Part shown: positions 5,363 through 27,000 of the stretch, piece after piece | Layout of the letters: every line of letters starts with the position of its first letter | Position numbering within the stretch: position 1 is the first letter of the stretch | The notes under the pieces: model-generated | Seen by the model: only the letters and a program-made list of their open reading frames with translations | Told to the model about the DNA's origin: nothing | Databases searched by the model: none | Position numbers and translations under genes: made by a program | Sequence record: OU343167.1 | DNA length: 64,000 nucleotides | Reading direction: 5' to 3' (one strand)

Positions 5363-5397
5363 GGTAATTTACTCACTTGTTAAACGAGGAGCTTCAA

Positions 5398-8094: not shown

Positions 8095-8097
8095 CGA

Positions 8098-8128
8098 CAT
8101 AAAGCCCGGCCTTGAGCCGGGCAATATG
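8098..8128. terminator. Bidirectional terminator, CATA...TATG family
   Basis: CATA-AA-GCCCGGC-CTTGA-GCCGGGC-AA-TATG between convergent genes. Confidence 0.8.
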
Positions 8129-8133
8129 TTGCT

Positions 8134-9420
8134 TTAACCTTCAACCCCTAAAATTCGATAATATGCTGTCTCGTCTCTAAACGGATGAGCTGGATAACGT
8201 CCACCATCAACGATCTCTTGCTCAGGCCATGCTCGCGTATTAGCATCATAGGAATTCCTACGGTTTAATACAGCGCAGTAGACATACATATTTTCATGTT
8301 GAGGGATTATACCTTCATGGTGAGGTTCTTTGATTGTGTGATAATCTAGCATCCTACCATACGCACCAACGAGAGGCGATCTATCGTATTTGTTATCGAA
8401 GTAACGTCCAGGTAGATTGAGATATTCTACAGCTTCGTATTCCTGGAAGAATGATTGGGAATCAACGATTACAAAGAAACTCTGACTAAGAGTTAAATAC
8501 TTTCGGATAACATCATTGTTTTTGAGTTCATCTACATTGAATAGAGTCGGGTTCTCTTTATCGAATGTTAATCCGAGAGAAGAGAGATCCATTGCGTGGT
8601 ATGACTCTAGATAACGATCTAAAAACATCATGTTACCAAACTGAACTCTCCATGTTCTTTCGCCTACACGATTATAAACACTAGATAGAACGTTTAGATA
8701 ACCGCCAGTAACAAGCAATACAGTTTTATTCTCGATGTCAACATTCTCAGGCATGGTTAGATAAGTACCATCCCACAAAGGGGCAGTGGGATTAAGTCCG
8801 CTAATCATACTGTCAACAATAGGAACAAAAGTAAGCTTACCAATAGTTTCGAAACTGTAAACACCAATTTGGTTATCGTTACATTTACGTAACGTCGTAT
8901 TTCCATCAATAATCCTTACACCAGCACTGGTATAGTCACATAAATGGAAATAACCATTAACAGAGATCATGGAATAATCTCTGATCTTTGAAGGCTGATG
9001 TTTTGGATGAGTCATAAGGAGATCTTCCTTATGGAAATCACTCCCTTGATCTAAAGGATGGCCTCCACGAGCAACTGGGGTAAAGTTATAACCACAGTGC
9101 CATGCTTGAGCATACTTTACCAAACGAATTTTTTCGTTAGGTAGTTCTGCATCAAAAGGTAGAGCTTTATTACCTAAAGAGGTTAACCACTCTTGAACAG
9201 TAACAGTTGGTTCAACATCGTTTAGCCAGTTAGTAACATTAACCCAGTGCAGTGCTCTTGTTACAGGCTCACCTTGGCCAGGATATTGGATGTAGAGATA
9301 AATATCCCCATACTTCGCAGCTAGTGTAGTTACTAGCTCATTTGTAAAGTCCGCTTCCTGCCACCGACCACCTCGGCGACTAGGGCGATACCTAGAACGT
9401 ACAAGCACGTACATTGTCAT
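8134..9420 (-). CDS. Virion structural protein (gp130-like position, 428 aa)
   Basis: Long ORF with GGAG SD; synteny. Confidence 0.7.
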   Translation of the reverse strand: MTMYVLVRSRYRPSRRGGRWQEADFTNELVTTLAAKYGDIYLYIQYPGQGEPVTRALHWVNVTNWLNDVEPTVTVQEWLTSLGNKALPFDAELPNEKIRLVKYAQAWHCGYNFTPVARGGHPLDQGSDFHKEDLLMTHPKHQPSKIRDYSMISVNGYFHLCDYTSAGVRIIDGNTTLRKCNDNQIGVYSFETIGKLTFVPIVDSMISGLNPTAPLWDGTYLTMPENVDIENKTVLLVTGGYLNVLSSVYNRVGERTWRVQFGNMMFLDRYLESYHAMDLSSLGLTFDKENPTLFNVDELKNNDVIRKYLTLSQSFFVIVDSQSFFQEYEAVEYLNLPGRYFDNKYDRSPLVGAYGRMLDYHTIKEPHHEGIIPQHENMYVYCAVLNRRNSYDANTRAWPEQEIVDGGRYPAHPFRDETAYYRILGVEG

Positions 9421-9508: not shown

Positions 9509-11791
9509 ATGTCCACCGTTAGTACAACCGGTCTATATGACGAGGATTTGCATGGGACTAACCCAGCTAACCTTATCACAGGGGAAATCCAAACCCTGCA
9601 AGTACCCGGCCCTACCGATTACTATTTCATTATTCCGAAAGCGGCACCTTTCTTTGTCGACTCTCTTAAAGTACGGAACAACCAGACCGGTGCTCTGTTT
9701 GTAGAGGGTGTCGATTACATGATCGGTCACCGTTTCATCGAAGCAATGGATTCTATTGGTCGACCGATCGCTGGTTCTATCCGCTTCATGAAACGCTCTA
9801 TCGCCGGTCAAGCACGTCTTGACTATCGGACCATCGGTGGGCAGTGGGGCTTTAGCGACCAAGCTATTCTGGCGGAACTGTCTCGTCGACAGTATAACCC
9901 GCTGATTCGTACATGGGGTAATATTGATGTACTCCCTGCCTCGTTCCCACCTCTCGATCACGATCAACCGATCGATAGTCTAGTGGGTTCAGAAGAGATT
10001 AATGCTTCTCTTCAACGTCTTGGCGATATCATGGAAGCAACTGCTTCCGGTACAACCGAGTCGCACTTAAGAGATTTCGATAACCCGCACCGTGTTAATA
10101 AGGTACAGGTTCAGCTTGGTAACGTGCCTAACTTCTCTATGGCGACTGACCAGCAACATAAAGACGGTAATCGTAACGATCTGTTTACGAACCCTCGTGG
10201 TGTGCTGCTTTCTATTCAAGAGAATGCCCTTAAGCCTCTTAATGCTCACATTACTGCGACCGGTAACGTTCATGGAATGGTCCCGCGTGACATTGGTCTG
10301 GGTAACGTTCCTAACTATCCTGCTGCAACACCACAACAGGCTGTTGATCCGACTAACAATAGTACCTTGATGACTCCATATACGGTGTCTCTGCTTATTC
10401 AAGCCGTTCAAGGTGATCCTCGTCTTGATCAATTAATCATTGACTTCAATAAACACCTTACCGATACTAACCCGCACGATATCACTCCTGGTCTAATTGG
10501 TACTTATACCAAGCAAGAAATTGATCAGAAGATTTCGGCTGGTGGAAGTGGTGGTGATGCCACTACCTTTGGTGGTGAAACACCTGAGGAATGGGAAGCT
10601 AAATTCCCAGCTAATAGCGATATCAATGGGATCATGTCGGAAGTGACTGAGAAGATCGCTGAAGGTATTGCATCTTCAGCTGACATCAGCTTTAATGATC
10701 CGACTCCTCCAGACGAACAAGATAAACAGCGACTGAGTAAGATTCAAGGCGTACAAGCCGGTGCTGCTGCGTATGCATTGTTCAATGGATCGGGTGATAC
10801 AGTTTATCGTTCCGAGCCAGGTGGAGCAGATGCTTATCCAAAAACTCCAATTCATGGAGCAGCTTGGTCGTGGCTAAGTCTACAAGATGCAGATTATCAC
10901 CTAGTCCCAGCGGTACGTGACTTCCAGTCCGGTACTTGGTCTCAAGGTGATGGTATCCGTGCAGCGGGTTCTGCTAAGCTGGCTATCCCGGCAGGTTGGG
11001 CGGCCGGCGCTGGTTTCAATCAGGCGAATGCAATGGTTGCTATGTGGGGTTCTAAGACAGCTCTATATGTTCAACTGAAGCCCAGTGATGGTGCAGACGA
11101 AGGTAAGATCATGAAGATCGCCGGCGGCACTGTAACTCAACTGTACGCTGAATCTGATAACGTTACTGAGATGTGGGTTGCGACTGAGGATGAAGATTCT
11201 CGTCAAATGGCAATTGTTGAAAAGTCTCCGCCTTCTGGTGGTCCGACTTATACAGCAATAGGTGCCAGTGACTGGGTTTCGGCTGCTACTCCAGTTATCG
11301 CAGCACAATTGACCGGTGGGTGGGAAATCTCTGATATCCGGATTGGTTCTAAGTATCTCGTGTTCCAAGGTGGTAATACCACCAGCGGGAATGCTAGTCG
11401 AATCCGTGTGTATGAGATTACATATACACCTACGTTCAAGTTGACTGAAGTCACTTCTACTCTCGATGTCTGGTCGGCTAAAGATAACCGTCTAGTCAAA
11501 GCAAATACCCTAACCGATGTAAGTTCTATCTCTGGTAACTACGGGCACCATGCTGTTCAAATTAGACGTGATCCGTCCAGCCTTGAGAATATGGATACTG
11601 ATATCGCTATGTTCGGTTCCAATGAGAATGGACAGTTAGAAATTCCTTACGGGTCAGCACCTTTCTATAGTGCGGCTGCTGGTAAAGGTTTCACTGTTAC
11701 TGTCAATAATCTTGGTTACACTGAATTCTGGGGTGACTCTCCGACCAATGCTCTCATCTGGAATGATGGGACGACTATTGTCGCACCCTAA
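9509..11791 (+). CDS. Tail fibre/baseplate protein (gp131-like, 760 aa) with probable C-terminal beta-propeller
   Basis: AAGGAGG SD; N-terminal domain shared with three downstream paralogs; three H-x(4-5)-NPH/NVH fibre repeats; RCC1-like FGSNENGQL...AAGKGFT...FWGD at the C-terminus. Confidence 0.8.
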   Translation: MSTVSTTGLYDEDLHGTNPANLITGEIQTLQVPGPTDYYFIIPKAAPFFVDSLKVRNNQTGALFVEGVDYMIGHRFIEAMDSIGRPIAGSIRFMKRSIAGQARLDYRTIGGQWGFSDQAILAELSRRQYNPLIRTWGNIDVLPASFPPLDHDQPIDSLVGSEEINASLQRLGDIMEATASGTTESHLRDFDNPHRVNKVQVQLGNVPNFSMATDQQHKDGNRNDLFTNPRGVLLSIQENALKPLNAHITATGNVHGMVPRDIGLGNVPNYPAATPQQAVDPTNNSTLMTPYTVSLLIQAVQGDPRLDQLIIDFNKHLTDTNPHDITPGLIGTYTKQEIDQKISAGGSGGDATTFGGETPEEWEAKFPANSDINGIMSEVTEKIAEGIASSADISFNDPTPPDEQDKQRLSKIQGVQAGAAAYALFNGSGDTVYRSEPGGADAYPKTPIHGAAWSWLSLQDADYHLVPAVRDFQSGTWSQGDGIRAAGSAKLAIPAGWAAGAGFNQANAMVAMWGSKTALYVQLKPSDGADEGKIMKIAGGTVTQLYAESDNVTEMWVATEDEDSRQMAIVEKSPPSGGPTYTAIGASDWVSAATPVIAAQLTGGWEISDIRIGSKYLVFQGGNTTSGNASRIRVYEITYTPTFKLTEVTSTLDVWSAKDNRLVKANTLTDVSSISGNYGHHAVQIRRDPSSLENMDTDIAMFGSNENGQLEIPYGSAPFYSAAAGKGFTVTVNNLGYTEFWGDSPTNALIWNDGTTIVAP

Positions 11792-12203: not shown

Positions 12204-13571
12204 ATGTCCGATGTAATCGTACAACTACCGTTAGATAAGACCGGACGTGATCCGAATAACCTGGTAGGTAGCGAAGAAGCAACTCTTACCCCTATCTCGG
12301 GGTTCCCGTTTAAAATGGTAACCATGTATCACGGCGGCTTCTATGTTAATAGCCTTCGTGTATATGACTCTCGTTACATTCCTTTGGTTCGTGATAAAGA
12401 TTACATTGTCACGTATTACCATAAACAAGCCAGTGAGTTCTATGGACTTGATATTGCTAGCGGTATTGTTTTCTTAGATCGTACTCGCACTGGTAAAGTT
12501 TACATGTCCGCCCAGATGGTCGGTGGAGATGTAGCGTTTAGTTTCACGGTTATCGAAGATTATGTAAACTTCTGGAAGACCAAGCCTTCTGACTATATTC
12601 CTAAATGGCTTGACTATAACGGTACTGAACCGATTTATGGTCCTGGTGAATTAGCCGCATTACGTTGGCGCCTTGATACTTACCAGCCATTTAACAACGA
12701 GATTGAGAATATCTCTCGCGCTATTACTGGTCAGCTTGGTAACACAGAAGCTGAGTTTCGTGTAGATGTAAAAGCGGAATATGATCGTTTCTTACAACGC
12801 TTTAATAATCGACTCGATTTACACATCCAAGATAAAGCGAACCCGCACGTTGATACAAAAGAACATGTAGGTTTAGGACTTGTAGAAAACTACCGCGTGG
12901 CAAGTCTTGCTGAGGCTATCGCCGGTGTATCTAACGAGCTTTATCTTACCCCACAGCTTTCAGCTGCTGAAGTAAATAAACTTGGTGGTGATCCGTTACA
13001 AGCGCATATTGATGCCCGAGGTAATGTGCATGGTGTTACCAATGCGCAATTGAATACCAACAGCAAGCAAGAAGTGAATGCTCTAGCTAATACCAAATAT
13101 CTACGGAATGAAGTTGTTGAAAACTCTAACCTTGGATTCTGGTTAAATCAGGATATGACATACAACCAGATTCTACAGTTGTATCGTAAAGATATCCCGG
13201 CAAATGCTTTCACTAACTACGACCAAGGTAAACTTCCTCTTGGTCGACTCGGTCGTGGTATTCTGAATAACCGTGCTGTTCTCGATAACAATCGGAACTG
13301 GACTAACATTGATGCCCTGCTATCTCTTCTTCCTCAAGGTGGCAGTGGAGATGTTGCATTCGCATCTTTCAGTGTCAATATCACTCAGGCGCAAGCCAAC
13401 GCAATGGTTGCTACAACACCGCCGTTCTCTAACATGCGTTTGAATAGTATTGTTTTCTATTACATTCGCGAGACTAAGGCATGGGGTTCTGGTAACGGTG
13501 CATGGAACGGTGTATATGACATTCTTTACGCTTCTATGAATATCCCAGGTCAAGGTTGGGTACCAATCTAA
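12204..13571 (+). CDS. Tail fibre paralog (gp132-like, 455 aa)
   Basis: LDKTGRDPNN N-terminal motif, two NPH/NVH repeats, C-terminal WGSGNGA. Confidence 0.8.
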   Translation: MSDVIVQLPLDKTGRDPNNLVGSEEATLTPISGFPFKMVTMYHGGFYVNSLRVYDSRYIPLVRDKDYIVTYYHKQASEFYGLDIASGIVFLDRTRTGKVYMSAQMVGGDVAFSFTVIEDYVNFWKTKPSDYIPKWLDYNGTEPIYGPGELAALRWRLDTYQPFNNEIENISRAITGQLGNTEAEFRVDVKAEYDRFLQRFNNRLDLHIQDKANPHVDTKEHVGLGLVENYRVASLAEAIAGVSNELYLTPQLSAAEVNKLGGDPLQAHIDARGNVHGVTNAQLNTNSKQEVNALANTKYLRNEVVENSNLGFWLNQDMTYNQILQLYRKDIPANAFTNYDQGKLPLGRLGRGILNNRAVLDNNRNWTNIDALLSLLPQGGSGDVAFASFSVNITQAQANAMVATTPPFSNMRLNSIVFYYIRETKAWGSGNGAWNGVYDILYASMNIPGQGWVPI

Positions 13572-13581
13572 AGGAATCAAC

Positions 13582-14988
13582 ATGAACCCATTACTTCACG
13601 CTCTTCCCTACGATGGGACGGGCACTTGTTTCAATAACCGCACGCGTGGAGAATACCACAACTTGGCAGATCAAGCTGGTCTGCCATATCGGGTGATTGT
13701 TCTGGATAAAGGTTACTTCTACAATAACAATTTACACATGATCGATGGTCGTGGCTATGTGTTAAAAGAGAAGGACGATTTCCAATGCACTCAGATGCAT
13801 CCAGAGATTACTAAGAAGACTGGCATTCCAGCTTTTGCAGTTATTGTCATTAAGAACCCACGGGTTCACCATGAGATCAGGGTTGATGCCCAGATGGTCG
13901 GTGGTGTTTACTGTAATCTTGGTAAAGCAATCGCTAACCAAGCACTCGGGTTGATCAACAATACTCGGAAGATTCATTGGAACAATATTACTGGTAAACC
14001 GGATGATTACAAACCCAACGGTCACCTACATGCGCTGTGGGAACTTTACGGGTTTACGCCTCAAGTATTACTACTTAAGCGAATTACTGCCGCCGGTGAA
14101 AAGTTCGTAAAGAAAGACATGGATGCTTTGTTTGACCAATATAAAGCCGAGCTTGCTTTAGTTGGAGATGAACTTACTTCCATTGAGCAACGTCTTACTA
14201 CCCACATTAACGATCGTAATAACCCGCACAAACTCACTGCCGCTAAAGTTCAGCTGGATAAAGTGAAGAATGCTGCTATTGCTACGAAAGATCAAGCTGA
14301 AGCAGCTAACGGGGATATTCTGGATCGTTACGCTACGCCATTACGAGCTAAGCAAAGTATCGACAAGAACTTCTTACCGATTCTACAAGCGCACGTTGAT
14401 GACCGTAATAACCCACACAAAGAGACAGCTGCTAAACTTGGTACGTATACCGTTCAAGAACATCAGCAAGTTGCTGGGAACTATTACAACCGTGGTGAAA
14501 CCGTTAACAGTACCGAACGTATTGGTGGCGTTAAAGATGCCAACAACAATACGACTAGCAATGGCATGACTTTCCAAGAGCTTTACGAGTTCACTCGTCA
14601 GAATGAAATCCTTGGACAGCTGAAGACTGGTTTGTTGCCACCGCAAACTTTTGCAAGTGGGGCTATTCCACCTGCTAACAACTACGCGTTCCTTGTTCCT
14701 GCTTCTGCTGATGCAGCAAGCTGGCTTCATTGGATCGATATCCAAACAGCATGGATCGATAAACCAAAGAGCGTTATTTATGCGGCAGGGTCATTTGATC
14801 CTAACGGTGCAAACGCTGAAGCTCAGTTGAACAACGTGCTAGGTAGGAACCACCCTGCTGGTACAACGGCCATCTTCCGTTATCTTGGTGGCTGGGGTAT
14901 CGGTACTGGTAACGGTGCAATCACAACGTATATTAACTCCGTTGGTTTCGCTGTATTTAATACATCGTTAAATTCCTGGAAGGTATAA
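13582..14988 (+). CDS. Tail fibre paralog (gp134-like, 468 aa)
   Basis: YDGTG...N motif, two NPH repeats, C-terminal WGIGTGNGA. Confidence 0.8.
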   Translation: MNPLLHALPYDGTGTCFNNRTRGEYHNLADQAGLPYRVIVLDKGYFYNNNLHMIDGRGYVLKEKDDFQCTQMHPEITKKTGIPAFAVIVIKNPRVHHEIRVDAQMVGGVYCNLGKAIANQALGLINNTRKIHWNNITGKPDDYKPNGHLHALWELYGFTPQVLLLKRITAAGEKFVKKDMDALFDQYKAELALVGDELTSIEQRLTTHINDRNNPHKLTAAKVQLDKVKNAAIATKDQAEAANGDILDRYATPLRAKQSIDKNFLPILQAHVDDRNNPHKETAAKLGTYTVQEHQQVAGNYYNRGETVNSTERIGGVKDANNNTTSNGMTFQELYEFTRQNEILGQLKTGLLPPQTFASGAIPPANNYAFLVPASADAASWLHWIDIQTAWIDKPKSVIYAAGSFDPNGANAEAQLNNVLGRNHPAGTTAIFRYLGGWGIGTGNGAITTYINSVGFAVFNTSLNSWKV

Positions 14989-16353
14989 ATGAACGATATT
15001 ACTTTTCTTGAGCTTGACCTTACCGGTGAAGATCCAGATAACTGGATTAAAGGTGAGGAACACACTCTAATTCAAGTTCCTGGTAAGAAGCATCGCGTAT
15101 TCGTTTGTACCCATGGCGGTTTCTATACGAATGGCTTTGTACTGAGGGACTCTACTGGTAAAGCTCTTGTGCGTGGTAAAGACTATGTTCTAACGTATCA
15201 CTACGAAAAGCTTTCTGAAATGACTGGTCAAAATGTGATGGGTCTCGTTGTTATCGTCAACGCCTCCGTCACACCAGTCGTTCGTGCGGAATATCATGCA
15301 GTAGGTGGATTCTTTAGTGTTTCTGTAAAAGAACTTAAAGCACTAATGGAGAAGATAGATGAGACTAATCTTAAGTTTACTTGGGAAGAAATCATCGGTA
15401 AACCAACTGCATATACTCCATCAGAACACATGCACAAATATTGGCAGTTGTATGGTCTTGAATCCACGGTTGTCAATATTAACCGTTTAGGTGATGCATG
15501 GGCAGTGGGTCGAACTGCAATTCTAGCGGCTGGTACGGATTATTACAAATATTACGTTCAGCTTGCGAAAGACGATGTGCAGAATTATATCAACCGTGTG
15601 AACGCTCACATAACCGATGAAAATAATCCGCACTCTTCGGATAAGGTAAAGATTAAGCTTGGGCAAATTAACAACTGGCCAATGGCTACAAAAGCTCAGA
15701 CAACAGATACTAGCCTAACCAATGTGTATATGCCGATTGGTGGTATTTTCAATCTGATCCAATCCATTTTGATTCCAAAGATTACAGATCACATTCGTAA
15801 TCAAAATAACCCTCATGGGTTAACACTGGCGATCATGAACTTGTACAGTAAAGCTGAAATCGATGCTATTTATGCACAACGGCTTCACCGTACACAACGC
15901 GCATTTACATCTAAACGGTTGGCTGGGGTTGGTTGGGAACAATTGTATTTCCCTGCACGAGTTGACCTAGATGCTAGTAACGTTTGGAATATCACTCGCT
16001 TTGAATTAAAGCAATTCGTTACGACTTTCCCAACTCCATGGCCTCCTACTGGAACTGATCCCCAAGGTCGTCCAAATATCCCGTCTGACTACTGCATTAT
16101 GGGTAATGGACAAATCGTTCACTTCCGTGATCTATTTGCGACTTATAATGCTAATGCACGCGGGCACTATTATGCTGGTGGGCGTTATGCTAGCGCTCAA
16201 GCTGCTATCAGTGCTCTCCAGGCAAATATCTCGCAGATTGCTGATGGTGGTTATGGATTTGCTCAATACTTGCTGGACTTCAACAATGGTCGCAAAATGC
16301 CAACAATGGTTGTAATGCGCCGTAACGGTAGTAGTCTCACTCGAATCGTCTAA
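14989..16353 (+). CDS. Tail fibre paralog (gp135-like, 454 aa)
   Basis: LDLTGEDPDN motif, WEEIIGKP, two NPH repeats; abuts the upstream stop codon. Confidence 0.8.
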   Translation: MNDITFLELDLTGEDPDNWIKGEEHTLIQVPGKKHRVFVCTHGGFYTNGFVLRDSTGKALVRGKDYVLTYHYEKLSEMTGQNVMGLVVIVNASVTPVVRAEYHAVGGFFSVSVKELKALMEKIDETNLKFTWEEIIGKPTAYTPSEHMHKYWQLYGLESTVVNINRLGDAWAVGRTAILAAGTDYYKYYVQLAKDDVQNYINRVNAHITDENNPHSSDKVKIKLGQINNWPMATKAQTTDTSLTNVYMPIGGIFNLIQSILIPKITDHIRNQNNPHGLTLAIMNLYSKAEIDAIYAQRLHRTQRAFTSKRLAGVGWEQLYFPARVDLDASNVWNITRFELKQFVTTFPTPWPPTGTDPQGRPNIPSDYCIMGNGQIVHFRDLFATYNANARGHYYAGGRYASAQAAISALQANISQIADGGYGFAQYLLDFNNGRKMPTMVVMRRNGSSLTRIV

Positions 16354-16365
16354 AGGAAATTACAC

Positions 16366-16962
16366 ATGTTCGATTTTCATAATGTACCAGAACCTGAAAA
16401 GGGTCGTAAACCTGTTGTCCTTTGTTTTAACCGTCTGAATGGTAAGTTCATCGTTGCTACTTCGATGACTATCGATCAATGCGATCCAGATAACCCAAAC
16501 GTGATCTATGTTGAAGACAACATGGATCTGTTTAATGGTGACCGAGTTGTCGGTGACCTCACCATCAATGACGATGGAACCTGGGAAAAGAACTACTCTA
16601 TTCTTGGAGAGAACGAAGGTCCTCGTCTGATCTATGAAGCACAGCTGGACAACCAGATGGCTTACAAGATCACTCAACGTTATCCTGTCGTAGAACAAGT
16701 AAACGTGCTTGGGCGTGCAATCGTGGCTCTTGCAGAGAAGACCGGTCTTGAACTTACTGAACTTAGTGAGATGCTAGACTATATCAAACTCTGTAAAGAT
16801 ACTAGTCGAAATCACAAAGAGTTCTATCAGAATGATCCCAACTACGAATACATTACCAATGAGCAAGAAGCCGAAGATCGAGCTGCTACCTTCGAAGGCG
16901 GTCTCCATGAACTCATTGGCCCAAGAAACATCGAAGGCGGTCGTGTTTTCGCAACCAGTTAG
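16366..16962 (+). CDS. Hypothetical protein, possible fibre assembly chaperone (198 aa)
   Basis: AAGGA SD; directly after the fibre cluster; QRYPVVEQVNVL resembles YPxxxEQLxxL motifs of fibre-adjacent small proteins (weak). Confidence 0.6.
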   Translation: MFDFHNVPEPEKGRKPVVLCFNRLNGKFIVATSMTIDQCDPDNPNVIYVEDNMDLFNGDRVVGDLTINDDGTWEKNYSILGENEGPRLIYEAQLDNQMAYKITQRYPVVEQVNVLGRAIVALAEKTGLELTELSEMLDYIKLCKDTSRNHKEFYQNDPNYEYITNEQEAEDRAATFEGGLHELIGPRNIEGGRVFATS

Positions 16963-17389
16963 TGAAAGACTGGTGGAGTACTTAAAAGCGCTACCTCGTG
17001 CAAGATGGTACAATCGCAAGAAGATAAATAGTATCCCTACCAAGGGTACAGTGGAAGCAAACTACTGGTTCCTTGGTAATGGTCAGATGCCAAAAGAACT
17101 TAGCGATTATCTGTTTGAAATTGCACCAACTATCAATGGGATAAAACCCAAAGAAGCATGTGTCAATATGTACGAGGTTGGTTTTGGTATGCCGGAACAT
17201 ATCGACATTGCAATGTATCGATTTAATATGGTAATTGCATTGTGTGATAATGGAGATGGACTCGACCTAAATGGTGAGTTCATCCCAGATGTTCCTGGAA
17301 GAGCAGTAATCTTTCCAGCTAAAACACCACCGCATTCTGTACCACCCGTAAAACACCTACGCTTCGTTCTCATCTATCTCTACGAGTAG
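16907..17389 (+). CDS. 2OG-Fe(II) oxygenase superfamily protein
   Basis: NxY...MPEHID (HxD), PPHSV (distal His), HLRFVLIY (2OG-binding Arg). Start is ATG 16907 or GTG 16943; both follow a copy of TCGAAGGCGGTC. Confidence 0.75.
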   Translation: MNSLAQETSKAVVFSQPVSERLVEYLKALPRARWYNRKKINSIPTKGTVEANYWFLGNGQMPKELSDYLFEIAPTINGIKPKEACVNMYEVGFGMPEHIDIAMYRFNMVIALCDNGDGLDLNGEFIPDVPGRAVIFPAKTPPHSVPPVKHLRFVLIYLYE

Positions 17390-17396
17390 GACAGAT

Positions 17397-17885
17397 ATGT
17401 ATAAACATTACGACCCCCTTACCGAAGAGGAAGTAACTACTTTAGTAGACCTCTCTCGTAAGGTTAAATATAAAGACTCGTATGGCTCTCGTTGCCGTAT
17501 CGGTAAGAACAAAACCAAAGCACTGAGTATTTACAACTATTCTAAGTGGTTTGATTGGACATCTAAACAACGAGATATCTTCAAGGTTGGTTTTAGTGAA
17601 GATATCCAAAATAAAGCTGTTCAAGGTTGGTTCCTAGATATTCCAGCTGGTCGTGGTTTCCTCGATCAGATGACAACGTGGGTCAATAAAACTGGTGCAG
17701 GTACCATCGTCGCAACTGCATTAAAAGATAGACAAGCCATTCAACTTAATGGACGTTTGATCGAACTTCGTAAAGGTGAACAGATCGCCTTTAACCTTAG
17801 TACAGTTCACGCGATTCCTAAATCCGACCATGGTCAGTTGTGGGCATGTGTAATGATACGTGGTGACTTCCAACAGTACACCTAA
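17397..17885 (+). CDS. Degenerate 2OG-Fe(II)/DSBH-fold paralog (162 aa)
   Basis: Aligns by eye to the upstream oxygenase (GFLDQM vs GFGMPEHID; LNGRLI vs LNGEFI; VHAIP vs PHSVP) but lacks HxD and the Arg. Confidence 0.6.
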   Translation: MYKHYDPLTEEEVTTLVDLSRKVKYKDSYGSRCRIGKNKTKALSIYNYSKWFDWTSKQRDIFKVGFSEDIQNKAVQGWFLDIPAGRGFLDQMTTWVNKTGAGTIVATALKDRQAIQLNGRLIELRKGEQIAFNLSTVHAIPKSDHGQLWACVMIRGDFQQYT

Positions 17886-17886
17886 C

Positions 17887-17916
17887 GGCATAAACCTCCC
17901 TAACGGGAGGCAAGCC
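17887..17916 (+). terminator. Hairpin terminator
   Basis: GGCATAAA-CCTCCC-TAAC-GGGAGG-CAAGCC after TAA 17885. Confidence 0.6.
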
Positions 17917-17968
17917 AAAAATTCATACACAATGGTACAATGAACTTTCTAAGTCAAGGATTAAAAGA

Positions 17969-18865
17969 ATGGCTAGTAACCCTATCGATCAGCAGATTAT
18001 CAACGTAGTACGTACGTGCTATGCATCTTATCTGCAAACTACAAAATATCTCGGTCTATCTCCGTTCCGTGTGATTGCACATACAACTCTGAATGAGAAG
18101 TTCGGTGTACAAAATGGCGTAACTCCAGCAGCGGGTGAAATTCCGAACGTGCGTTATATGGTAATTGGTAACATGGGTCACTACACAATCAAAGCCGCTG
18201 ATGGCTCCGATGAAGTAGAAAACCGTATTCACCGTTCTAACCATGCTGCACTTTATAACCATATTCCGTTTGCACTGCGTGAAGTAACTGATGATCTTCC
18301 AGCCGCACAACGGGATCGGTTCTGCTTACGTGTTCCGGAAAAACATAATGGTAAAAACTACGTTGCCTATTATGGAATGCGCATTAACGTTACAGGTGTA
18401 CAACCACAGCTTCTGGAAATCGAAGTAATTAATGGTATTCCAACACCGAAACCGTACACACCAACTGTTGATGATCTTAACCCAGTACCGCCAGCTATTT
18501 CGAACAACGGTACAGTTATCGGTTCTAACGTAAATATCTCGGCTAGTGCAATTGTTAAGGTAAGTTTGTCTGCTGAAGATATTATCGAGATCACCAATGC
18601 GCATCGAATTCGTACTACATCGACTCGTTCTCCGATTATCTCTGAGATCGGCTTGTGTTCTGGTGTTGACCGTAAGGTCGATGCACCCGCCGGTACGGGT
18701 GGTTCGTTCCAATATCTCGAAGTAATCGCTTGTCAAGTTAACGTACATATTGCCACTAACCATCCAATCGGTTATAACTCGAATGGTCTTAATCTGACCT
18801 TCGATATTGGTGGCGTTGAGCCTACTCTTGGCGACAAGGCAGTAAACGTAGCTAAGTTCGTATAA
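17969..18865 (+). CDS. Virion structural protein (gp139-like position, 298 aa)
   Basis: AAGGA SD; long ORF; [10 protein letters not shown] resembles EIGL motifs of baseplate/fibre-attachment proteins. Confidence 0.7.
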
Positions 18866-18875
18866 GGACTTGGTT

Positions 18876-19442
18876 ATGTTGCAGATGCCTGAAAGCGATG
18901 AACCATTCCGTGTTGCTTCGTTCGACCCAGGTTCGTCTAACTTGGGTCAAGCGTTGTTGGAACATGGCTTTAAGAATGAAGGTGTGGCGGTGAAAACCGC
19001 CTATACCTCTGTTCTTAGAGATACTCATCCGGACTATTCAATGTTCGGGGAATTGCATGGTAGTCGGGTAGTCCGATTAATGATCATGCGAGATTTGATA
19101 CTAGACTTCTTAAGGACACATAGACCACATGCTGTTATTGTTGAATCTAACTATCTAGGTAGATTTGCCACAAGCTTTGCCGCATTGGTTGAATGTGTTG
19201 CCGTTATACGAAGTGCTCTTTTTGAGTATGACCCTTTTATACCGCTTTACATGGTTGACCCTACAACAGTTAAAACCAACGTGGGTATGAAGAAAATTAA
19301 GGGTACAGACAAAGAAGATGTGCGACGTGTATTGGTAAGTAGACCCGATGTTGTTTGGGGTGATGTTGACCATAATCAACTAGATGAACACTCCATCGAT
19401 GCTGTAGCAATCGGTTACTATTTCCTTACGCAGTTGTTCTAG
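18876..19442 (+). CDS. ruvC: RuvC-like Holliday junction resolvase
   Basis: ASFDPGSSNLG (Asp), VIVESNY (Glu), PTTVK, HSIDAVAIG (Asp): the RuvC catalytic pattern. Confidence 0.85.
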   Translation: MLQMPESDEPFRVASFDPGSSNLGQALLEHGFKNEGVAVKTAYTSVLRDTHPDYSMFGELHGSRVVRLMIMRDLILDFLRTHRPHAVIVESNYLGRFATSFAALVECVAVIRSALFEYDPFIPLYMVDPTTVKTNVGMKKIKGTDKEDVRRVLVSRPDVVWGDVDHNQLDEHSIDAVAIGYYFLTQLF

Positions 19443-19949
19443 ATGCGAGGTAGTATGTTCAACTGGTTAAAAAACATCAAGTGGTTTAATTGGGTGTTTA
19501 TCGGTATAGTTATTACCGGTGGGCTTGGACTGTTGTTCTTCTATAACCAGTATACTGATCAGCTTGTACACAATGGCAGTTTAGTTGAGAAAAATGGTCA
19601 ACTAGAAGTCAAAGTCGAAATGCAGGGTAAGTCAGCTGCCATCACTGATGAAACCGTTACTCAGTATACCACTCAAAAAGTCGATGAGCTGAGAGAGCTG
19701 GAACAATCACGAGCAGGAGTGATTGATGAGTACATTAACTTATCCGGGAATTCTGGGGTCAAGTGGCCTACTACAGAAAATATCCCTGTGGAAAAAATTC
19801 GGGATGAATCTATTCGGAAGAATCCCACCGCCGCCATTAAAGATAATGGTAGTGTTACTGACGATGTTGCTCTTATCACCCTTGCTAATAGGATGTACGA
19901 GCACTACTGCAAAGCCAAGCGGCTGGACCCGCAGTGCGGTACCAAGTAG
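19443..19949 (+). CDS. Probable inner-membrane spanin (i-spanin, Rz-like)
   Basis: N-terminal TM (WVFIGIVITGGLGLLFFY), coiled-coil periplasmic part, two C-terminal Cys; overlaps a lipoprotein gene. ATG 19455 has the better SD (GAGGT). Confidence 0.75.
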   Translation: MRGSMFNWLKNIKWFNWVFIGIVITGGLGLLFFYNQYTDQLVHNGSLVEKNGQLEVKVEMQGKSAAITDETVTQYTTQKVDELRELEQSRAGVIDEYINLSGNSGVKWPTTENIPVEKIRDESIRKNPTAAIKDNGSVTDDVALITLANRMYEHYCKAKRLDPQCGTK

Positions 19950-20196
19950 CTTTACTCAACTTTGCTATGTAGCTCCTCCACCGTCAGCTGACGATCTCAT
20001 CAATGCACCTAGTCGGTATAAAGTAGCTGGGATCACTGATCCATGGGAAGCTCGTTTCCTATTGATGACAGATCACTGGTTATTACAGACTGACTATCTC
20101 GGTTCGTGTAATTTGCAAATCGAGAAGCTCCGTGACTGGGATAAAAAACAGTCAGAGATGGAGAGAAGCTATGACTCTGGAAAAAATATTAAGTGA
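19804..20196 (+). CDS. Probable outer-membrane spanin lipoprotein (o-spanin, Rz1-like)
   Basis: +1 frame overlap with the i-spanin 3' end; signal peptide ending LLIGC lipobox; Pro-rich APPPS; start ATG 19804 or 19846. Confidence 0.75.
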   Translation: MNLFGRIPPPPLKIMVVLLTMLLLSPLLIGCTSTTAKPSGWTRSAVPSSFTQLCYVAPPPSADDLINAPSRYKVAGITDPWEARFLLMTDHWLLQTDYLGSCNLQIEKLRDWDKKQSEMERSYDSGKNIK

Positions 20197-22127: not shown

Positions 22128-24077
22128 ATGATGGCTGAAGAAAAGAAAAAGGTTTCTGAACTCGATTTTCTGTCTGGTCTAACCGGACAGGAATTCGTAG
22201 AGGTTGTTGCTCGCGATACAGAAGGTTCTTATAAGAACTATCGTGTACTCGCAGATAAATTACGTGTAGGCGCTTCTGCTTTTGATGGCGCTGTCAAAGC
22301 TGGTTTTGTCGGTACTGAAGAAGAATGGTTAGAAAGCCTACACGGAGCTGATGGTAAGTCTGCTTATCAGATCGCTCGTGATAATGGTTTCGTTGGTACT
22401 GAAGAACAATGGCTGGAAAGCCTAGAAGGCGCTAATGGTAAGTCCGCATACGAATCCGCTGTTGATGGTGGATACGTTGGTACTGAAGAAGAATTTAACC
22501 TGTCGCTTGCCGAACCGAAAGGTGTAAATGGTGGCGTATTCATCACTGATATCACTCCGGTTAATGCCGCTGATAACGTCGGTGAGAAGGTTAAGTCCGC
22601 GGATAGTTTCTCTCTGGTGCAATGTTCTTCGTCTACTCGTGACGTTAAAGTTAAAGTGGCTGCTATTACCGGTCATACTAACTATCGTCCTGTCGTTAAA
22701 GTTAACGGCGTAGATGTATCTCTCGTCGCTGGTGCAAATGCCCCGATGTGGACCGGTGAAGTAACTATTAATCTGCCTGAGCCGGTTGGTAGTGATCCCA
22801 TTAAGGTCGAAGCTGTTCACGAAGATGGTGCTAAGGCATCTACTGATGTAATCATGGATACCGCGCCGGTTGTAACTGCGGCTACATTTACAGGTGAATA
22901 TCCTGGTTCTCAAACCGAGCTGAAAGCAGGCGACACAATGTCGATCACTTTCACCACTGACCAAGATGTGGTAGGTTATGAGATTCGTGATGAAGGTGCA
23001 TTCGTAGCACGCAATGGTACACTGACTGCTGGTAAGACTCACAGTCTGATTGGTCTGGTTATTGCTGACCGTGGTAACACTGCTACTAACCAACCGTTCA
23101 GTATCCGCGTTAAGAAAGCCTCCGGTAGTTTCTCCGCGTGGTATAAGTCCGACGTAGCTGGTACTACTGAGAAAGTCAACGTTGTCAAGCTGAACAACCT
23201 GAAACCGACGATTACATTCGGTGCTGTAACTTATCCGGCTGGTCAAACTGCCATTAAAGCTGGTGAAGATGCAACCGTTGCTAACACTGTAACTAACGCT
23301 ACTAGCGCTACTTACACCTCGGCTAATGGTCAGCTGACTGTAACTAACCCGACTCAGATTGAAGCAAACAAAACTGTTTCTTACCTGACTGGTAATTACA
23401 ACGACCTGACTAATAACCTGACAATCACTGCGCAACGTGCTGCTAACGGTAGTTCGTCTACTGCATCGACAATCGTTAAGATTGCTAACGGTGCCCCTGA
23501 ACTGACTGTTACCACTCCTGCCACTCGTCTGCGCTCTGGTGGTAATGCAGGTACTGTTGTACAGCGTCACACCATCACTATCACTTCGACTCAATCGCTG
23601 GCTGAAGCCCCTGTGATGACTGCTCCTGGCGGTAACTGGGATTCTGCTGGTTGGGTGGGTGATGCAGCTAAGAAAGTATGGACACGCACACTGCTCGTTC
23701 ATGATGATGATGCTAAAGGTATCTTCAACTTTACCGATGTTGTAGCCAAAGGTCTGGCTGGCGTTACAGTCAATACCCTTAAAGCTGGTGGCGAGTATAC
23801 CCTTGGTGGCTTCGTTCTTCGTACCATGTCTATCGCTGCTTTCCCGAATCGTGAAGGTGCTATTGGTACAGATGTAGTTATGACTGGTAAACTTCGCTGC
23901 ACTAACCTGTCTAAGGGTGCTAGCGGTTCTCTTAACTTCACCTATAAAGCTGACGATGCTGATGCTGTAAATACTTACACCATCAAGAATAGCAATAGTT
24001 GGTATAACTGCGACGCAGCTAACGCTGTATCTAACACATCCGGTCTGATGCGCGTCGAACTTGAGGAAGTTGTATAA
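22128..24077 (+). CDS. Tail fibre/decoration protein with GKSAY repeats and Thr-rich Ig-like domains (649 aa)
   Basis: Three G[KA]SA[YF]...G[FY]VGTEE repeats; beta-rich T/V/A composition; GAAGGA SD. Confidence 0.8.
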   Translation: MMAEEKKKVSELDFLSGLTGQEFVEVVARDTEGSYKNYRVLADKLRVGASAFDGAVKAGFVGTEEEWLESLHGADGKSAYQIARDNGFVGTEEQWLESLEGANGKSAYESAVDGGYVGTEEEFNLSLAEPKGVNGGVFITDITPVNAADNVGEKVKSADSFSLVQCSSSTRDVKVKVAAITGHTNYRPVVKVNGVDVSLVAGANAPMWTGEVTINLPEPVGSDPIKVEAVHEDGAKASTDVIMDTAPVVTAATFTGEYPGSQTELKAGDTMSITFTTDQDVVGYEIRDEGAFVARNGTLTAGKTHSLIGLVIADRGNTATNQPFSIRVKKASGSFSAWYKSDVAGTTEKVNVVKLNNLKPTITFGAVTYPAGQTAIKAGEDATVANTVTNATSATYTSANGQLTVTNPTQIEANKTVSYLTGNYNDLTNNLTITAQRAANGSSSTASTIVKIANGAPELTVTTPATRLRSGGNAGTVVQRHTITITSTQSLAEAPVMTAPGGNWDSAGWVGDAAKKVWTRTLLVHDDDAKGIFNFTDVVAKGLAGVTVNTLKAGGEYTLGGFVLRTMSIAAFPNREGAIGTDVVMTGKLRCTNLSKGASGSLNFTYKADDADAVNTYTIKNSNSWYNCDAANAVSNTSGLMRVELEEVV

Positions 24078-27000
24078 TGGCTGGTGAATCCGCATTTGAA
24101 GTTTTCGTTAACGGTGAGTTACCAAAACGTATCTCCACCGAAGACAATCCTCTTGAGGTAGTTGCAGGCAAGATCCCGGTTTCGACCGGGGCTGGCCTGG
24201 CTACAACTTTCAAAGACCCGACCGAAATCGAGGGAATGAAAGGTGAGGATGGCGCGGATGGTAAATCCGCTTATCAGCTGGCACTCGATGCTGGCTTTAT
24301 TGGTACCGAAGCCGAGTGGCTCGAATCGCTGAAAGGCGAAGACGGCGCTAAAGGTGATACTGGTCTGCAAGGTAATCCTGGTGAACCGGGTCCCGTTACC
24401 AATATCAAAGGTACCGTAACTCTTGACGATTTCGAAACCAACATTGCTCCCATCGATAGTTGGGAATTTGGTGATGCTTGGTTCGTTCGTTCTTCCACTG
24501 CTACTGTACTGAAAGTATGGTCTGCCCCAGAAACCGGTTCGCCGGATGCTGGCCAGTGGATCGACTCCGGTGACATGCGTGGTCCGGAAGGTACTGGTCT
24601 TGTTATTCGTGGTCAATGGCCTGATAACCAAGAACTTCCGCCCTTGGCTGCCAAAGGTGATACCTACGGTTGGAAAAATGCTCTTTACACTTTCATGCTT
24701 GTAGCTGGTGAAGAAGATATCTTCCCTGACAACTATGCATACATCCAGATCGTGCCGATGGGTCCTGAGGGTCCTAAAGGTGATACTGGTGCCAAAGGTG
24801 ATAAAGGCGACCGTGGTCTGAAAGGTGACACTGGTGCACCTGGTAAGGACGCTACTCCGTTCACTATTAAAGCCGACTTAGCTTCCGAAGATGATCTGCC
24901 TCTGGCTGGCGATGCCAAGCCTGAAGAAGCATATTCGGTTATGGTTGACGATGTACGCCATCTATTCGTCTTCTCCGTCGATGAAAACCGCTGGATGGAT
25001 CTCGGTACTTGGCAGGGCCCGAAAGGTGAACCTGGTCAAGACGGTATCATCGGTGGCGACGGCCCGAAAGGGGACAAAGGCGATAAGGGTGATAAAGGCG
25101 ATCCTGGCCAAGATGGTATCGATGGTCAAGACGGTGCTCCTGGTGAAAACCTGGAAATCCTTGGTACGTATCCGACCATGGCAGATCTTCTGGCCGCAGG
25201 TGCTACTCTTGTCATCAAGAAAGCTTACGCTGTTCGCGATGTTAACACCCTCTTCTACGTAGCTACTACTCCTGTTACCTCTGAAGGCGACCTGATTAAC
25301 CTAGGTCAATTCAAAGGTGAGAAGGGCGACAAAGGAGATAAAGGTGACAAAGGGGATACCGGTGCAAAAGGCGATAAGGGTGACACCGGTGACGGTGGTA
25401 AGAACCTGGTTGTCTCCGGTGTTCTTCCTGACCTTGCTGCCATTCAAGCCGTACCTGATCCGCAAGAACAGGAAGCTTGGGTAGCTGCCGATAACCGCCA
25501 CCTCTACATGTTCATTGATGGAGCATGGGTTGACCTTGGTACTCATACTGGCGCCAAAGGCGATAAAGGGGACAAGGGCGATAAGGGTGATACTGGCGCC
25601 AAGGGTGACACTGGTGATAAAGGCGACAAAGGTGATCAGGGTGAAAACTTTGAAATCATCGCTGTTGTTGACACTGTAGGTGAAGTTCCTCCGGCCACTG
25701 CCGACAACAAAGGTAAAGCCGTTGTTGTTAAAGGCGGCGATGTTTATGTAAACATTAGTGGTACTCAGTTCGTATCTGTTGGTCCCATTGGCCAGAAAGG
25801 TGAACAGGGTGATCGTGGCGCCTCGATGCGCATCGTTGGTGAAGTAGGTTCTGTTGAAGCTCTACCTGAACTGGTAGCCGGTGAAACTGATCCCGCTGAT
25901 GGCGAGGCGTACATTGTTACCGTTATCCAGGGTGATGACACCATTAAGGTAATCTACGTAGCTAACCGCTCTACGAATACCTACGATGGTCCGTTCAATA
26001 TCCAGGGTCCGCAAGGTAACGATGGTCCGCAGGGTGAAGTAGGTCCTCGCGGTGAAATCGGCCAAGGTATCAAAATTGTTGGCGACTATCCGTCTGAAGC
26101 TGCTCTTACAGCTGCTCATCCGACTAGTGCTATTGGTGATGCATATTCGGTTGGTCCTGAAAACAGTAAAGAACTGTTTGTTTGGGCTGTCGATGGTGCT
26201 GATGATACTGAGAAGTATCTGAACCTGGGTAGCTTCACCGTTGGCGCCAAAGGCGAGAAAGGTGATAAGGGTGACCAAGGTATCGTTGGTCCTCGCGGTA
26301 TTCAAGGTGCAAAAGGTGATAAAGGTTCTCGTTGGGTAATTCTACCGAACGGTGTCGATATCCCGAATAACACTATTGGTACTCAAGATGACTGGTGCCT
26401 TGATAAGTCTGGTAAAGTTTGGTATCGTGACGCAACTGGCTGGAAAGAATTCATCCAACTTCTGGATGTTCCTGTAGCCGAAGTAGAAACTGCCGATCAG
26501 AACAAGAAGATGGTTCGCTATCAACTTGGCTGGGCACCTCTACTGGTCGATGAAGTGGAAACCCCTGAAGAAGGTGAACAGTATATCCGTAAGGGTAAAG
26601 CTGATGGCACCACCGAATGGGCTCCGCTTGAAGTAGATGCTGTACCAGACGTTCCTACTCCCAACATTGCTCTTGCAATGGTTCGTAAGGACGGTGAGTG
26701 GAAACAAGGTGCACCTATTGTCATTGCCAACGATGTTGATAAGCATTACGTTCTGAAGGGTAAGGCTAGCTGGGTCGAAACCGATGTCTTTAAAGACGCG
26801 GCTAGCGATGGTAAGTCTTACGCTCGTAAGGATGGTGCTTGGGCTGCGGTAGTACCTGAAACTACCAATGATGATAAACTGTACGCTCGTAAAACTACTG
26901 TTGCTGGCGTGTCCAGCTGGGTAGAGGTACCGGCTGCAATTATCGCATCGGATGCTCCGGATGCCAAGAACTACACTCGTTCTAACGGCGAGTGGAAAGA

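Follow-up and report, generated by a model that had tools for sequence, protein, structure and literature searches.

A 64,000-nucleotide stretch of sequence record OU343167.1 (hereafter the window) carries two adjacent open reading frames (ORFs), ORF1 and ORF2, beside its tail-fibre genes, which an earlier note made from the sequence alone had read as an Fe(II)/2-oxoglutarate (2OG) oxygenase and its degenerate twin. Our main new result is that this pair is really a trio, consisting of a gene for a protein resembling gp136 of phage phiKZ (gp136-like), the oxygenase gene ORF1 and its inactive paralogue ORF2. In several phage backbones that are unrelated to one another, the trio comes after genes for fibres or the baseplate, a link stronger than the earlier note could have known, and the trio probably helps to mature tail fibres. 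Judged by sequence identity, the window is part of a phiKZ-like Pseudomonas jumbo phage: over bases 16300-18900 it shows 100% identity to Pseudomonas phage vB_PaeM_phiLBG22 and 99 to 99.8% identity to PA1C, PS119XW, BRkr and HHBS36_1, all jumbo phages of about 300 kb. The genes of phiKZ from gp131 to gp146 have counterparts in the window in a one-for-one order (Table 1).

Using tblastn, ORF1, ORF2 and the gp136-like protein each matched 72 phage records, all of them Pseudomonas phages, and the gp136-like query additionally reached two non-jumbo phages. Among 38 IMG/VR loci collected with the ORF2 profile, all 37 that included upstream sequence had the three genes side by side on one strand, in the order given above. 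Loci L007 to L012 keep this order, and in most lineages the gp136-like gene extends into the ORF1-like gene. The cultured carriers (phiKZ-like phages, Noxifer, Astolliot and QdP_Psa3) all infect Pseudomonas, and two scans of representative bacterial genomes found no ORF1 relatives. The genomic settings are diverse. The 115-kb myovirus QdP_Psa3 has a baseplate wedge gene, two fibre genes and then the gp136-like, ORF1-like and ORF2-like genes, while in the T4-like phage Astolliot (174 kb) one gene of 181 amino acids (aa) lies between the baseplate wedge genes and the trio. A wedge protein and a fibre-like protein of 456 aa precede the trio in L011, fibre paralogues belonging to phrog_2163 (the PHROG of the window fibres) precede it in L012, and two related large proteins flank it in L009 and L010. 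In L007 (positions 4776-8648 of ENA ERZ25074192 contig_4, which at 1.66 Mb is of bacterial size), a gene resembling a fibre N-terminus comes before the trio, and a nuclease-like gene with weak NERD/DUF3782 matches is inserted between the gp136-like and ORF1-like genes. With ABC-F genes and a YoeB/antitoxin pair as neighbours, this locus may be what remains of a prophage or tailocin. Co-orientation with fibre genes lying upstream was observed in the window, the phiKZ-like phages, QdP_Psa3, L007, L011 and L012.

The trio is tightly packed in the window. Only 12 nt separate the end of the gp135-like gene from the first cassette gene, and the start region of ORF1, for which an alternative in-frame start exists at 16832, overlaps the gp136-like ORF (16366-16962) by 56 nt. 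ORF1 and ORF2 are separated by 7 nt, with a Shine-Dalgarno-like AGGA overlapping the ORF1 stop codon. The co-orientation and overlap with the fibre cluster described in the earlier note were therefore confirmed. Its term "fibre operon" fits in that fibre genes adjoin the pair, but the relevant fibres are those encoded upstream (gp131, gp133, gp134 and gp135 homologues) and not the collagen-like one 6 kb downstream on which it had focused. According to the cryo-electron microscopy atlas of phiKZ, the twelve tail fibres are hetero-hexamers made of three gp131 together with gp133, gp134 and gp135 (PMC13250141). The gp136-like protein had no match in Pfam, NCBIfam or PDB, and profile alignment ruled it out as a third paralogue with the double-stranded beta-helix (DSBH) fold (hhalign probability of 0.2%). 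Its family alignment revealed a conserved C-terminal tail, encoded within the stretch that overlaps the ORF1 start. Since this tail is conserved and contains His and Pro, it could, speculatively, be an alternative candidate substrate of ORF1. None of the three proteins matched a described chaperone family in Pfam, PHROG, NCBIfam or PDB.

By motifs, profiles and structural model, ORF1 appears to be a minimal, bona fide-looking Fe(II)/2OG oxygenase with all canonical iron- and 2OG-binding residues. The HxD...H...R set reported in the earlier note is present on the plus strand as quoted, within E97-H98-I99-D100, P142-H143-S144-V145 and L151-R152-F153-V154. Six residues (N87, Y89, H98, D100, H143 and R152) are invariant in all 154 distinct ORF1 relatives, which were gathered from protein searches and fetched loci. 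H98 and D100 aligned to the H-x-D of ALKBH8 and the H...R region to 6n1f, an uncharacterised Burkholderia oxygenase, with R152, nine residues past H143, falling on the arginine of 6n1f in the HMMER alignment. The AlphaFold model, built from a 29-sequence alignment, had a predicted local distance difference test score (pLDDT) of 91.3 and the expected eight-strand core, and it comprises this DSBH core plus one N-terminal helix. A Foldseek search with the model returned at least 260 PDB matches at E <= 0.001, and 50 of the 50 matches listed are 2OG oxygenases, including PolD, a PKHD-type hydroxylase, the Pseudomonas prolyl 4-hydroxylase (P4H) with EF-Tu, LH3, ALKBH5, viral collagen P4H (vCPH), AspH and AlkB. 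The best Pfam evidence was less decisive: ORF1 matched PF13640 (2OG-FeII_Oxy_3) at E = 1.5e-4 and 23.1 bits, under the gathering score of 27, every Pfam model remained below its gathering score and NCBIfam gave no match. Searches of PDB with single sequences gave noise only (a Sel1 repeat protein, IMPDH and Rab6).

ORF1 cannot at present be assigned to a subfamily of 2OG oxygenases from its profiles, because family members split between models: of 16 diverse members, six touch a P4H-type Pfam model and four the AlkB-type PF13532 (2OG-FeII_Oxy_2). The subfamily assignment proposed in the earlier note as a check was run with Foldseek and profiles, and the Foldseek hits likewise included protein hydroxylases and AlkB enzymes. 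The RefSeq and PHROG name of the family is "DNA endonuclease" (phrog_2297; also phrog_274, "DNA endonuclease V"), a label that we rejected after finding no support for it in fold, motifs or profiles. The GenBank record of phage Churi names its ORF1 homologue a 2OG-Fe II oxygenase, and some other homologues carry a precomputed Pfam hit.

Profiles and model also indicate that ORF2 is a true, full-length paralogue of ORF1 with the same fold and a degenerate catalytic site. The similarity between the two proteins, asserted in the earlier note, depends on the depth of the comparison. It was absent from pairwise BLASTP (E = 20) and from hhalign with narrow profiles (probability of 1.8% over 42 columns), but with profiles including distant relatives hhalign aligned 155 columns at a probability of 98.1% (E = 9.3e-14). 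A HMMER search of 1.84 billion representatives had enlarged the ORF2 family to 93 clusters, and distant ORF2-like proteins matched the ORF1 profile directly (E = 7.5e-7 and 1.2e-5). The ORF2 model (pLDDT of 87) has its secondary structures in the same order as ORF1. Its Foldseek matches included vCPH (8.6e-6), a PKHD hydroxylase, PHD2 and others, and in a viral structure library it matched a 150-aa Fe2OG dioxygenase of phage Psa21 with template modelling (TM) scores of 0.70/0.75. Judging by length and annotation, the latter is most likely the ORF1 orthologue gp190. Model, structural matches and profile match thus agree on a DSBH fold for the second ORF, as the earlier note had supposed.

The hhalign alignment paired R152 of ORF1 with Q147 of ORF2, N87 with L80, Y89 with I82 and H143 with H138. 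The distal histidine, H138, is kept in 142 of 152 distinct ORF2-like sequences, and of the three histidines of the window protein (positions 4, 138 and 145) it is the only conserved one. The earlier note was right that the distal histidine remains while the proximal one is lost, but D90 on strand II is also retained (136/152). At position 147, the counterpart of R152, the family has Q in 87 sequences, N in 16 and R in 10. With no proximal His, no Arg to bind 2OG and no Asn/Tyr, ORF2 lacks canonical 2OG binding and the first iron ligand and, on the evidence of its residues, cannot work as a 2OG oxygenase. The ORF2 equivalent of H98 differs with the method, being W95 by hhalign, F88 by the G-[F/H]-x-D pattern and D90 by hairpin geometry; strand parity places F88, D90 and M92 facing the pocket whichever register is used. 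Position 88 is F in 106 of the 152 sequences, L in 18 and H in 6, and the last group, with a His two residues before D90, has an H-x-D. No ORF2-like member examined joins H88 to R147. The H88-bearing proteins (in L006, L007, L008 at 8001-8486 (P0160), and L011) regain H-x-D...H, and one such protein comes from a phiKZ-like contig with otherwise identical synteny. ORF2-like proteins also share a conserved basic loop, in which R34 is kept in 131 of 152, and their profiles weakly resemble small-molecule-binding cupins.

Published data on relatives bear on both location and necessity. In the 201phi2-1 record, the trio homologues gp221 to gp223 carry no virion mass-spectrometry mark, whereas such a mark ("identified as virion protein by mass spectrometry") stands against 9 of the 11 flanking products, namely gp216-220, gp224 and gp226-228; of the other two, gp225 is unmarked and gp229 rests on a single peptide. 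The phiKZ atlas identifies 40 virion proteins, and gp136 and gp137 are not named in its text (PMC13250141). In the transposon insertion sequencing (TnSeq) of phiKZ (Table S2), gp137, the ORF1 homologue, received 577 reads at 2 sites, and zero insertions were recorded in gp131-136, gp138, gp139 and gp140 (bioRxiv 10.1101/2025.11.23.690004). The central 80% of gp138, the ORF2 homologue, contains 37 TA sites, of which 5 to 12 would be expected to carry insertions if gp138 were hit as densely as the clearly dispensable genes of Table S2; none was seen, with a probability of no insertion between 4e-3 and 4e-6. In an antisense screen, three oligomers against PHIKZ137 had no effect score, and PHIKZ137 was absent from the rows of the hit table that were covered here (PMC12571901). 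Hence gp137 is dispensable on PAO1 in the laboratory, and gp138 and gp136 look required. As gp137 tolerates insertions and gp138 has none, a role in which ORF2 merely assists ORF1 is a poor fit, and the phiKZ data argue against ORF2 as a mere accessory of ORF1.

Taken together, our preferred reading, in which our confidence is about evenly divided from our doubt, is that a co-translated, non-virion trio serves the assembly of the fibres or the peripheral baseplate, with ORF1 modifying a protein and ORF2 and the gp136-like protein acting without catalysis. Late in infection, the three products would be synthesised together and form a complex that works on fibre assembly. The indispensable, non-catalytic part, for instance binding, holding or folding a client, would fall to ORF2 and the gp136-like protein. 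ORF1 would add an oxygen-dependent modification, most likely a hydroxyl group, to a protein, candidate clients being the gp131, gp133, gp134 and gp135 homologues or the gp136-like C-terminal tail, and this modification would be dispensable for plaque formation in the laboratory. The sequences and models establish the fold, the catalytic residues, the paralogy, the gene order and the distribution; timing, complex formation, substrate and chemistry are what we infer.

Several points weigh against this reading. The proposed function is drawn from genomic context and conserved residues, and the neighbourhood is not purely structural: a RuvC-like resolvase and a spanin lie in it as well, so that gene position by itself does not prove a fibre role. 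We found no motif common to all of the upstream fibre proteins. By sequence profiles, the HxD region of ORF1 is closest to AlkB-type enzymes (ALKBH8, E = 1.1e-4), whose usual substrates are nucleic acids. With respect to genetics, the dispensability of gp137 rests on two insertion sites only. The TnSeq authors warn of polar effects (bioRxiv 10.1101/2025.11.23.690004), and the missing insertions in gp136 and gp138 could be partly polar.

The strongest rival, by reason of the local sequence resemblance to the AlkB family, is that ORF1 works like AlkB, oxidatively demethylating or repairing phage or host DNA or RNA, with ORF2 as a non-catalytic partner that binds nucleic acid and the position beside fibre genes incidental; we consider it unlikely. 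When the ORF1 profile was compared with solved structures over strands I and II, ALKBH8 was followed by ALKBH5, AlkB and ALKBH2, all covering N-x-Y...H-x-D at the same spacing. The four of 16 family members matching PF13532, the resolvase gene 1 kb downstream and the basic loop of ORF2 could be read in the same way. However, the AlkB-type matches span only about 37 residues around H-x-D, the sole sequence match over nearly the full core is 6n1f, a 2OG oxygenase with no assigned function, and the PF13532 score of ORF1 itself is far under threshold (E = 0.17; 12.5 bits against a cut-off of 31.2). Foldseek ranks protein hydroxylases (P4H/EF-Tu, LH3, PHD and vCPH) level with AlkB enzymes, and since the target-normalised TM scores to ALKBH5, AlkB and ALKBH2 entries are about 0.44 to 0.57, much of these structures is unmatched by ORF1. 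A protein of 160 aa leaves little space for a nucleotide-recognition lid, the unsupported endonuclease label of phrog_2297 lends no help, and the fibre/baseplate gene order is kept in at least five different genomic backgrounds.

We judge it equally unlikely that the substrate of ORF1 is a small molecule or a protein of the host, for instance an envelope or metabolite target or a translation factor such as the one that the Pseudomonas prolyl hydroxylase modifies, and that the cassette is a Pseudomonas-specific host-interaction module riding in tail clusters. The exclusively Pseudomonas hosts of the cultured carriers agree with this, as do the dispensability of gp137 on PAO1, the weakly cupin-like ORF2 profiles and the presence, among the Foldseek matches, of the P. 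putida P4H/EF-Tu complex and the iron-uptake factor PiuC. On the other hand, a host-takeover gene would not be expected to sit strictly behind fibre or baseplate genes at every locus, and gp136 and gp138 seem to be required even on a permissive laboratory host. Quite improbable, in our view, is a purely structural explanation, in which the gp136-like protein and ORF2 would be low-copy parts of the flexible outer baseplate or fibre and ORF1 a dispensable, hitch-hiking paralogue. Large peripheral baseplate and fibre parts of phiKZ and Goslar are indeed unmodelled (PMC13250141; Goslar preprint), and gp136 and gp138 are insertion-free like the surrounding structural genes. Nevertheless, gp221-223 of 201phi2-1 are unmarked by virion mass spectrometry while most of their neighbours are marked, and a hitch-hiking ORF1 is disfavoured because catalytic residues invariant in 154 of 154 relatives would not be maintained.

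The earlier note had proposed that ORF1 and its pseudo-enzyme hydroxylate Pro or Lys in the Gly-X-Y repeats of the downstream collagen-like fibre, the gp146 homologue, thereby stabilising the helix or priming glycosylation. That fibre exists as described, with eight G-D-K-rich Gly-X-Y runs of 5 to 11 triplets, including many X-Lys-Gly and some X-Pro-Gly triplets. The ORF1 and ORF2 models match structures of viral collagen prolyl hydroxylase, LH3 and P4H, and phiKZ, Psa21, 201phi2-1, PhiPA3 and HHBS36_1 (99% identical to the window) all have both the pair and a collagen-like gp146 homologue. The repeat chemistry nevertheless drifts while the active site of ORF1 stays invariant: the window and PhiPA3 have G-D-K repeats, phiKZ has G-P-E/G-P-Q repeats, and those of 201phi2-1 and Psa21, of the G-T-D/G-T-N kind, are nearly devoid of Pro and Lys. 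The co-occurrence of pair and collagen fibres, another check suggested at the time, was seen in these phiKZ-like phages but does not match the wider distribution, since relatives of the collagen-like fibre occur in 368 phage records from many genera, mostly without the pair, and the pair in 72. The complete QdP_Psa3 genome carries the trio and has no Gly-X-Y run of at least five triplets in any annotated frame, and 27 cassette loci outside the phiKZ-like phages have no collagen-like ORF within 6 to 9 kb, save for one five-triplet run. ORF1 also lacks a peptide-substrate-binding domain. Given the drifting repeats, the absence from QdP_Psa3 and the differing distributions, the gp146 homologue is judged, from these sequence comparisons, not to be the conserved target of ORF1, and the collagen proposal, largely refuted by distribution, is very improbable.

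Raw-sequence scans for Gly-X-Y call for some caution. The single run found in QdP_Psa3, of 12 triplets (L055, 18468-18575), is an artefact, lying antisense to an annotated 392-aa gene with a Pro/Thr/Asp-rich linker. In the window, the 649-aa ORF at 22128-24077 contains three copies of a motif of about 30 aa (G-K-S-A-Y ... G-T-E-E-x-W-L-x-S-L), and the same motif occurs once at the N-terminus of the collagen-like ORF (24077-24400). The motif stretch (query residues 52-105) matches tail fibre or assembly genes of Cellulophaga, Xylella, Acinetobacter, Xanthomonas and Staphylococcus phages with about 58 to 67% identity. In HHBS36_1 (L001, 17829-21484), the annotation divides the gp145-like region into two genes called "tail sheath", a label that looks wrong, and because the region has two extra Gly-X-Y runs absent from the 649-aa ORF of the window, this fibre region differs between near-identical phages. 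Among the upstream fibre proteins (13582-16353), the gp134- and gp135-like proteins each contain two copies of H-x-x-[DN]-x-N-N-P-H about 60 residues apart. This shared N-P-H motif was rejected as a common target, being absent from most other cassette-linked fibre proteins.

The remaining features of the region are listed in Table 1. Directly after the ORF2 stop (17895-17910) there is a 6-bp GC-rich hairpin with a 4-nt loop and no U-tract, the folding of which was non-significant against shuffled sequences (z of -1.3). The 84-nt spacer before the gp139-like gene is the counterpart of a location in phiKZ where a transcription start has been reported, upstream of orf139 (bioRxiv 10.1101/2025.11.23.690004). 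Scans of the region for sigma-70 promoters and terminators were uninformative, with fewer promoter-like sites than in shuffled sequences, and a Rfam scan of 16000-19000 gave no match. The reverse-strand ORFs of the region encode 60 to 89 aa and lie antisense to conserved genes. The gp139 protein is an inner-peripheral baseplate spoke protein (Goslar preprint). Between the gp139-like gene and the structural genes resembling gp142-146, bases 18870-20000 encode the RuvC-like resolvase and the counterpart of an annotated Rz-like spanin, as in phiKZ.

Table 1. Features of the window in and around the three-gene cassette.
Feature	Coordinates	Strand	Evidence
gp131-like fibre subunit, 760 aa, candidate client	9509-11791	+	ORF; synteny with HHBS36_1 and phiKZ
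gp132-like small paralogue, 107 aa	11803-12126	+	ORF; synteny with HHBS36_1 and phiKZ
gp133-like fibre subunit, 455 aa, candidate client	12204-13571	+	ORF; synteny with HHBS36_1 and phiKZ
gp134-like fibre subunit, 468 aa, phrog_2163, candidate client	13582-14988	+	PHROG match; synteny
gp135-like fibre subunit, 454 aa, phrog_2163, candidate client	14989-16353	+	PHROG match; synteny
gp136-like protein, 198 aa, first cassette gene	16366-16962	+	phrog_13209 match (4e-62)
ORF1, gp137 homologue, 160 aa, Fe(II)/2OG oxygenase by fold and residues	16907-17389	+	PF13640; model; Foldseek
ORF2, gp138 homologue, 162 aa, DSBH paralogue	17397-17885	+	Model; Foldseek; hhalign
DUF7208 protein, phiKZ gp139 homologue, downstream neighbour	17969-18865	+	Pfam (4.8e-112)
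RuvC-like resolvase	18870-19442		phrog_159
Collagen-like gp146 homologue, 1107 aa	24077-27400	+	Eight Gly-X-Y runs

The resemblance of gp137 homologues to 2OG oxygenases is already known from databases. Our literature searches found no paper on gp137/gp138, the degenerate paralogue, the three-gene unit or the fibre linkage, no biochemical data on gp137 homologues and no report of fibre-linked hydroxylases or of virion-protein hydroxylation in tailed phages. In giant viruses of eukaryotes, virion proteins are known to be hydroxylated after translation; to our knowledge, no such modification has been described for tailed phages. A more far-reaching proposal, which we regard as rather improbable, is that the trio represents an undescribed fibre-maturation system, in which the dead paralogue and its partner would form the indispensable assembly factor and ORF1 would write a mark dependent on oxygen, iron and 2OG on the fibres or the gp136-like tail. 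If it occurs in tailed phages, hydroxylation of virion proteins would add an extra chemical layer to host recognition, and such a fibre mark would link the adsorption machinery of progeny phages with the metabolism of the Pseudomonas cell that produced them. Even under an ordinary reading, an annotation is corrected, a three-gene unit with clear boundaries is defined and the collagen link is removed. The genes concerned are currently "hypothetical" or mislabelled "DNA endonuclease", and they are carried by phiKZ, the main model of nucleus-forming jumbo phages and a relative of therapy candidates. The phiKZ TnSeq data pose a puzzle, with robust insertions in the gene of the active enzyme and none in its inactive twin or gp136. 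The trio is a testable candidate for the fibre assembly factors of phiKZ-like phages, and existing phiKZ resources make it directly testable.

When compared with known systems, ORF1 shares with the Fe(II)/2OG superfamily the fold, the H-x-D...H triad and the arginine on the last core strand, and the Asn and Tyr preceding the triad are spaced as in the ALKBH8 alignment. It differs in being only 160 aa long, in having no substrate-binding additions and in scoring below all Pfam gathering scores. Within this superfamily, the AlkB family provides the best sequence match among solved structures, over strands I and II with N-x-Y and H-x-D, but the match is limited to about 37 residues and the genomic context is that of fibre genes and not of replication or repair. 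The viral collagen hydroxylases (the PBCV-1 prolyl 4-hydroxylase, 5c5t; lysyl hydroxylase LH3, 6fxr and related entries), to which Mimivirus L230 also belongs, have the same core fold and offer a parallel for a virus-encoded oxygenase beside a collagen-like structural protein. Unlike them, the cassette does not co-vary with collagen repeats and is present in a collagen-free phage, and ORF1 has neither a glycosyltransferase nor a peptide-binding domain.

Tail-fibre assembly proteins and chaperones of phages, for example of the Tfa or Caudo_TAP type, are encoded just downstream of fibre genes. The trio resembles them in directly following fibre genes, in the absence of virion marks on its 201phi2-1 homologues and in that phiKZ gp136 and gp138 are insertion-free like the adjoining fibre genes. 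Unlike them, it resembles no annotated chaperone family in sequence or profile, and we know of no pair of a DSBH enzyme and a pseudoenzyme described as a fibre chaperone, nor did our literature searches reveal one. Finally, as in other enzyme/pseudo-enzyme pairs, ORF1 and ORF2 are adjacent paralogues, one with a full catalytic set and the other degenerate yet strongly conserved. What sets them apart is that insertions in phiKZ were found in the active gp137 and none in the inactive gp138, the reverse of the picture in which the inactive member is a regulatory subunit.

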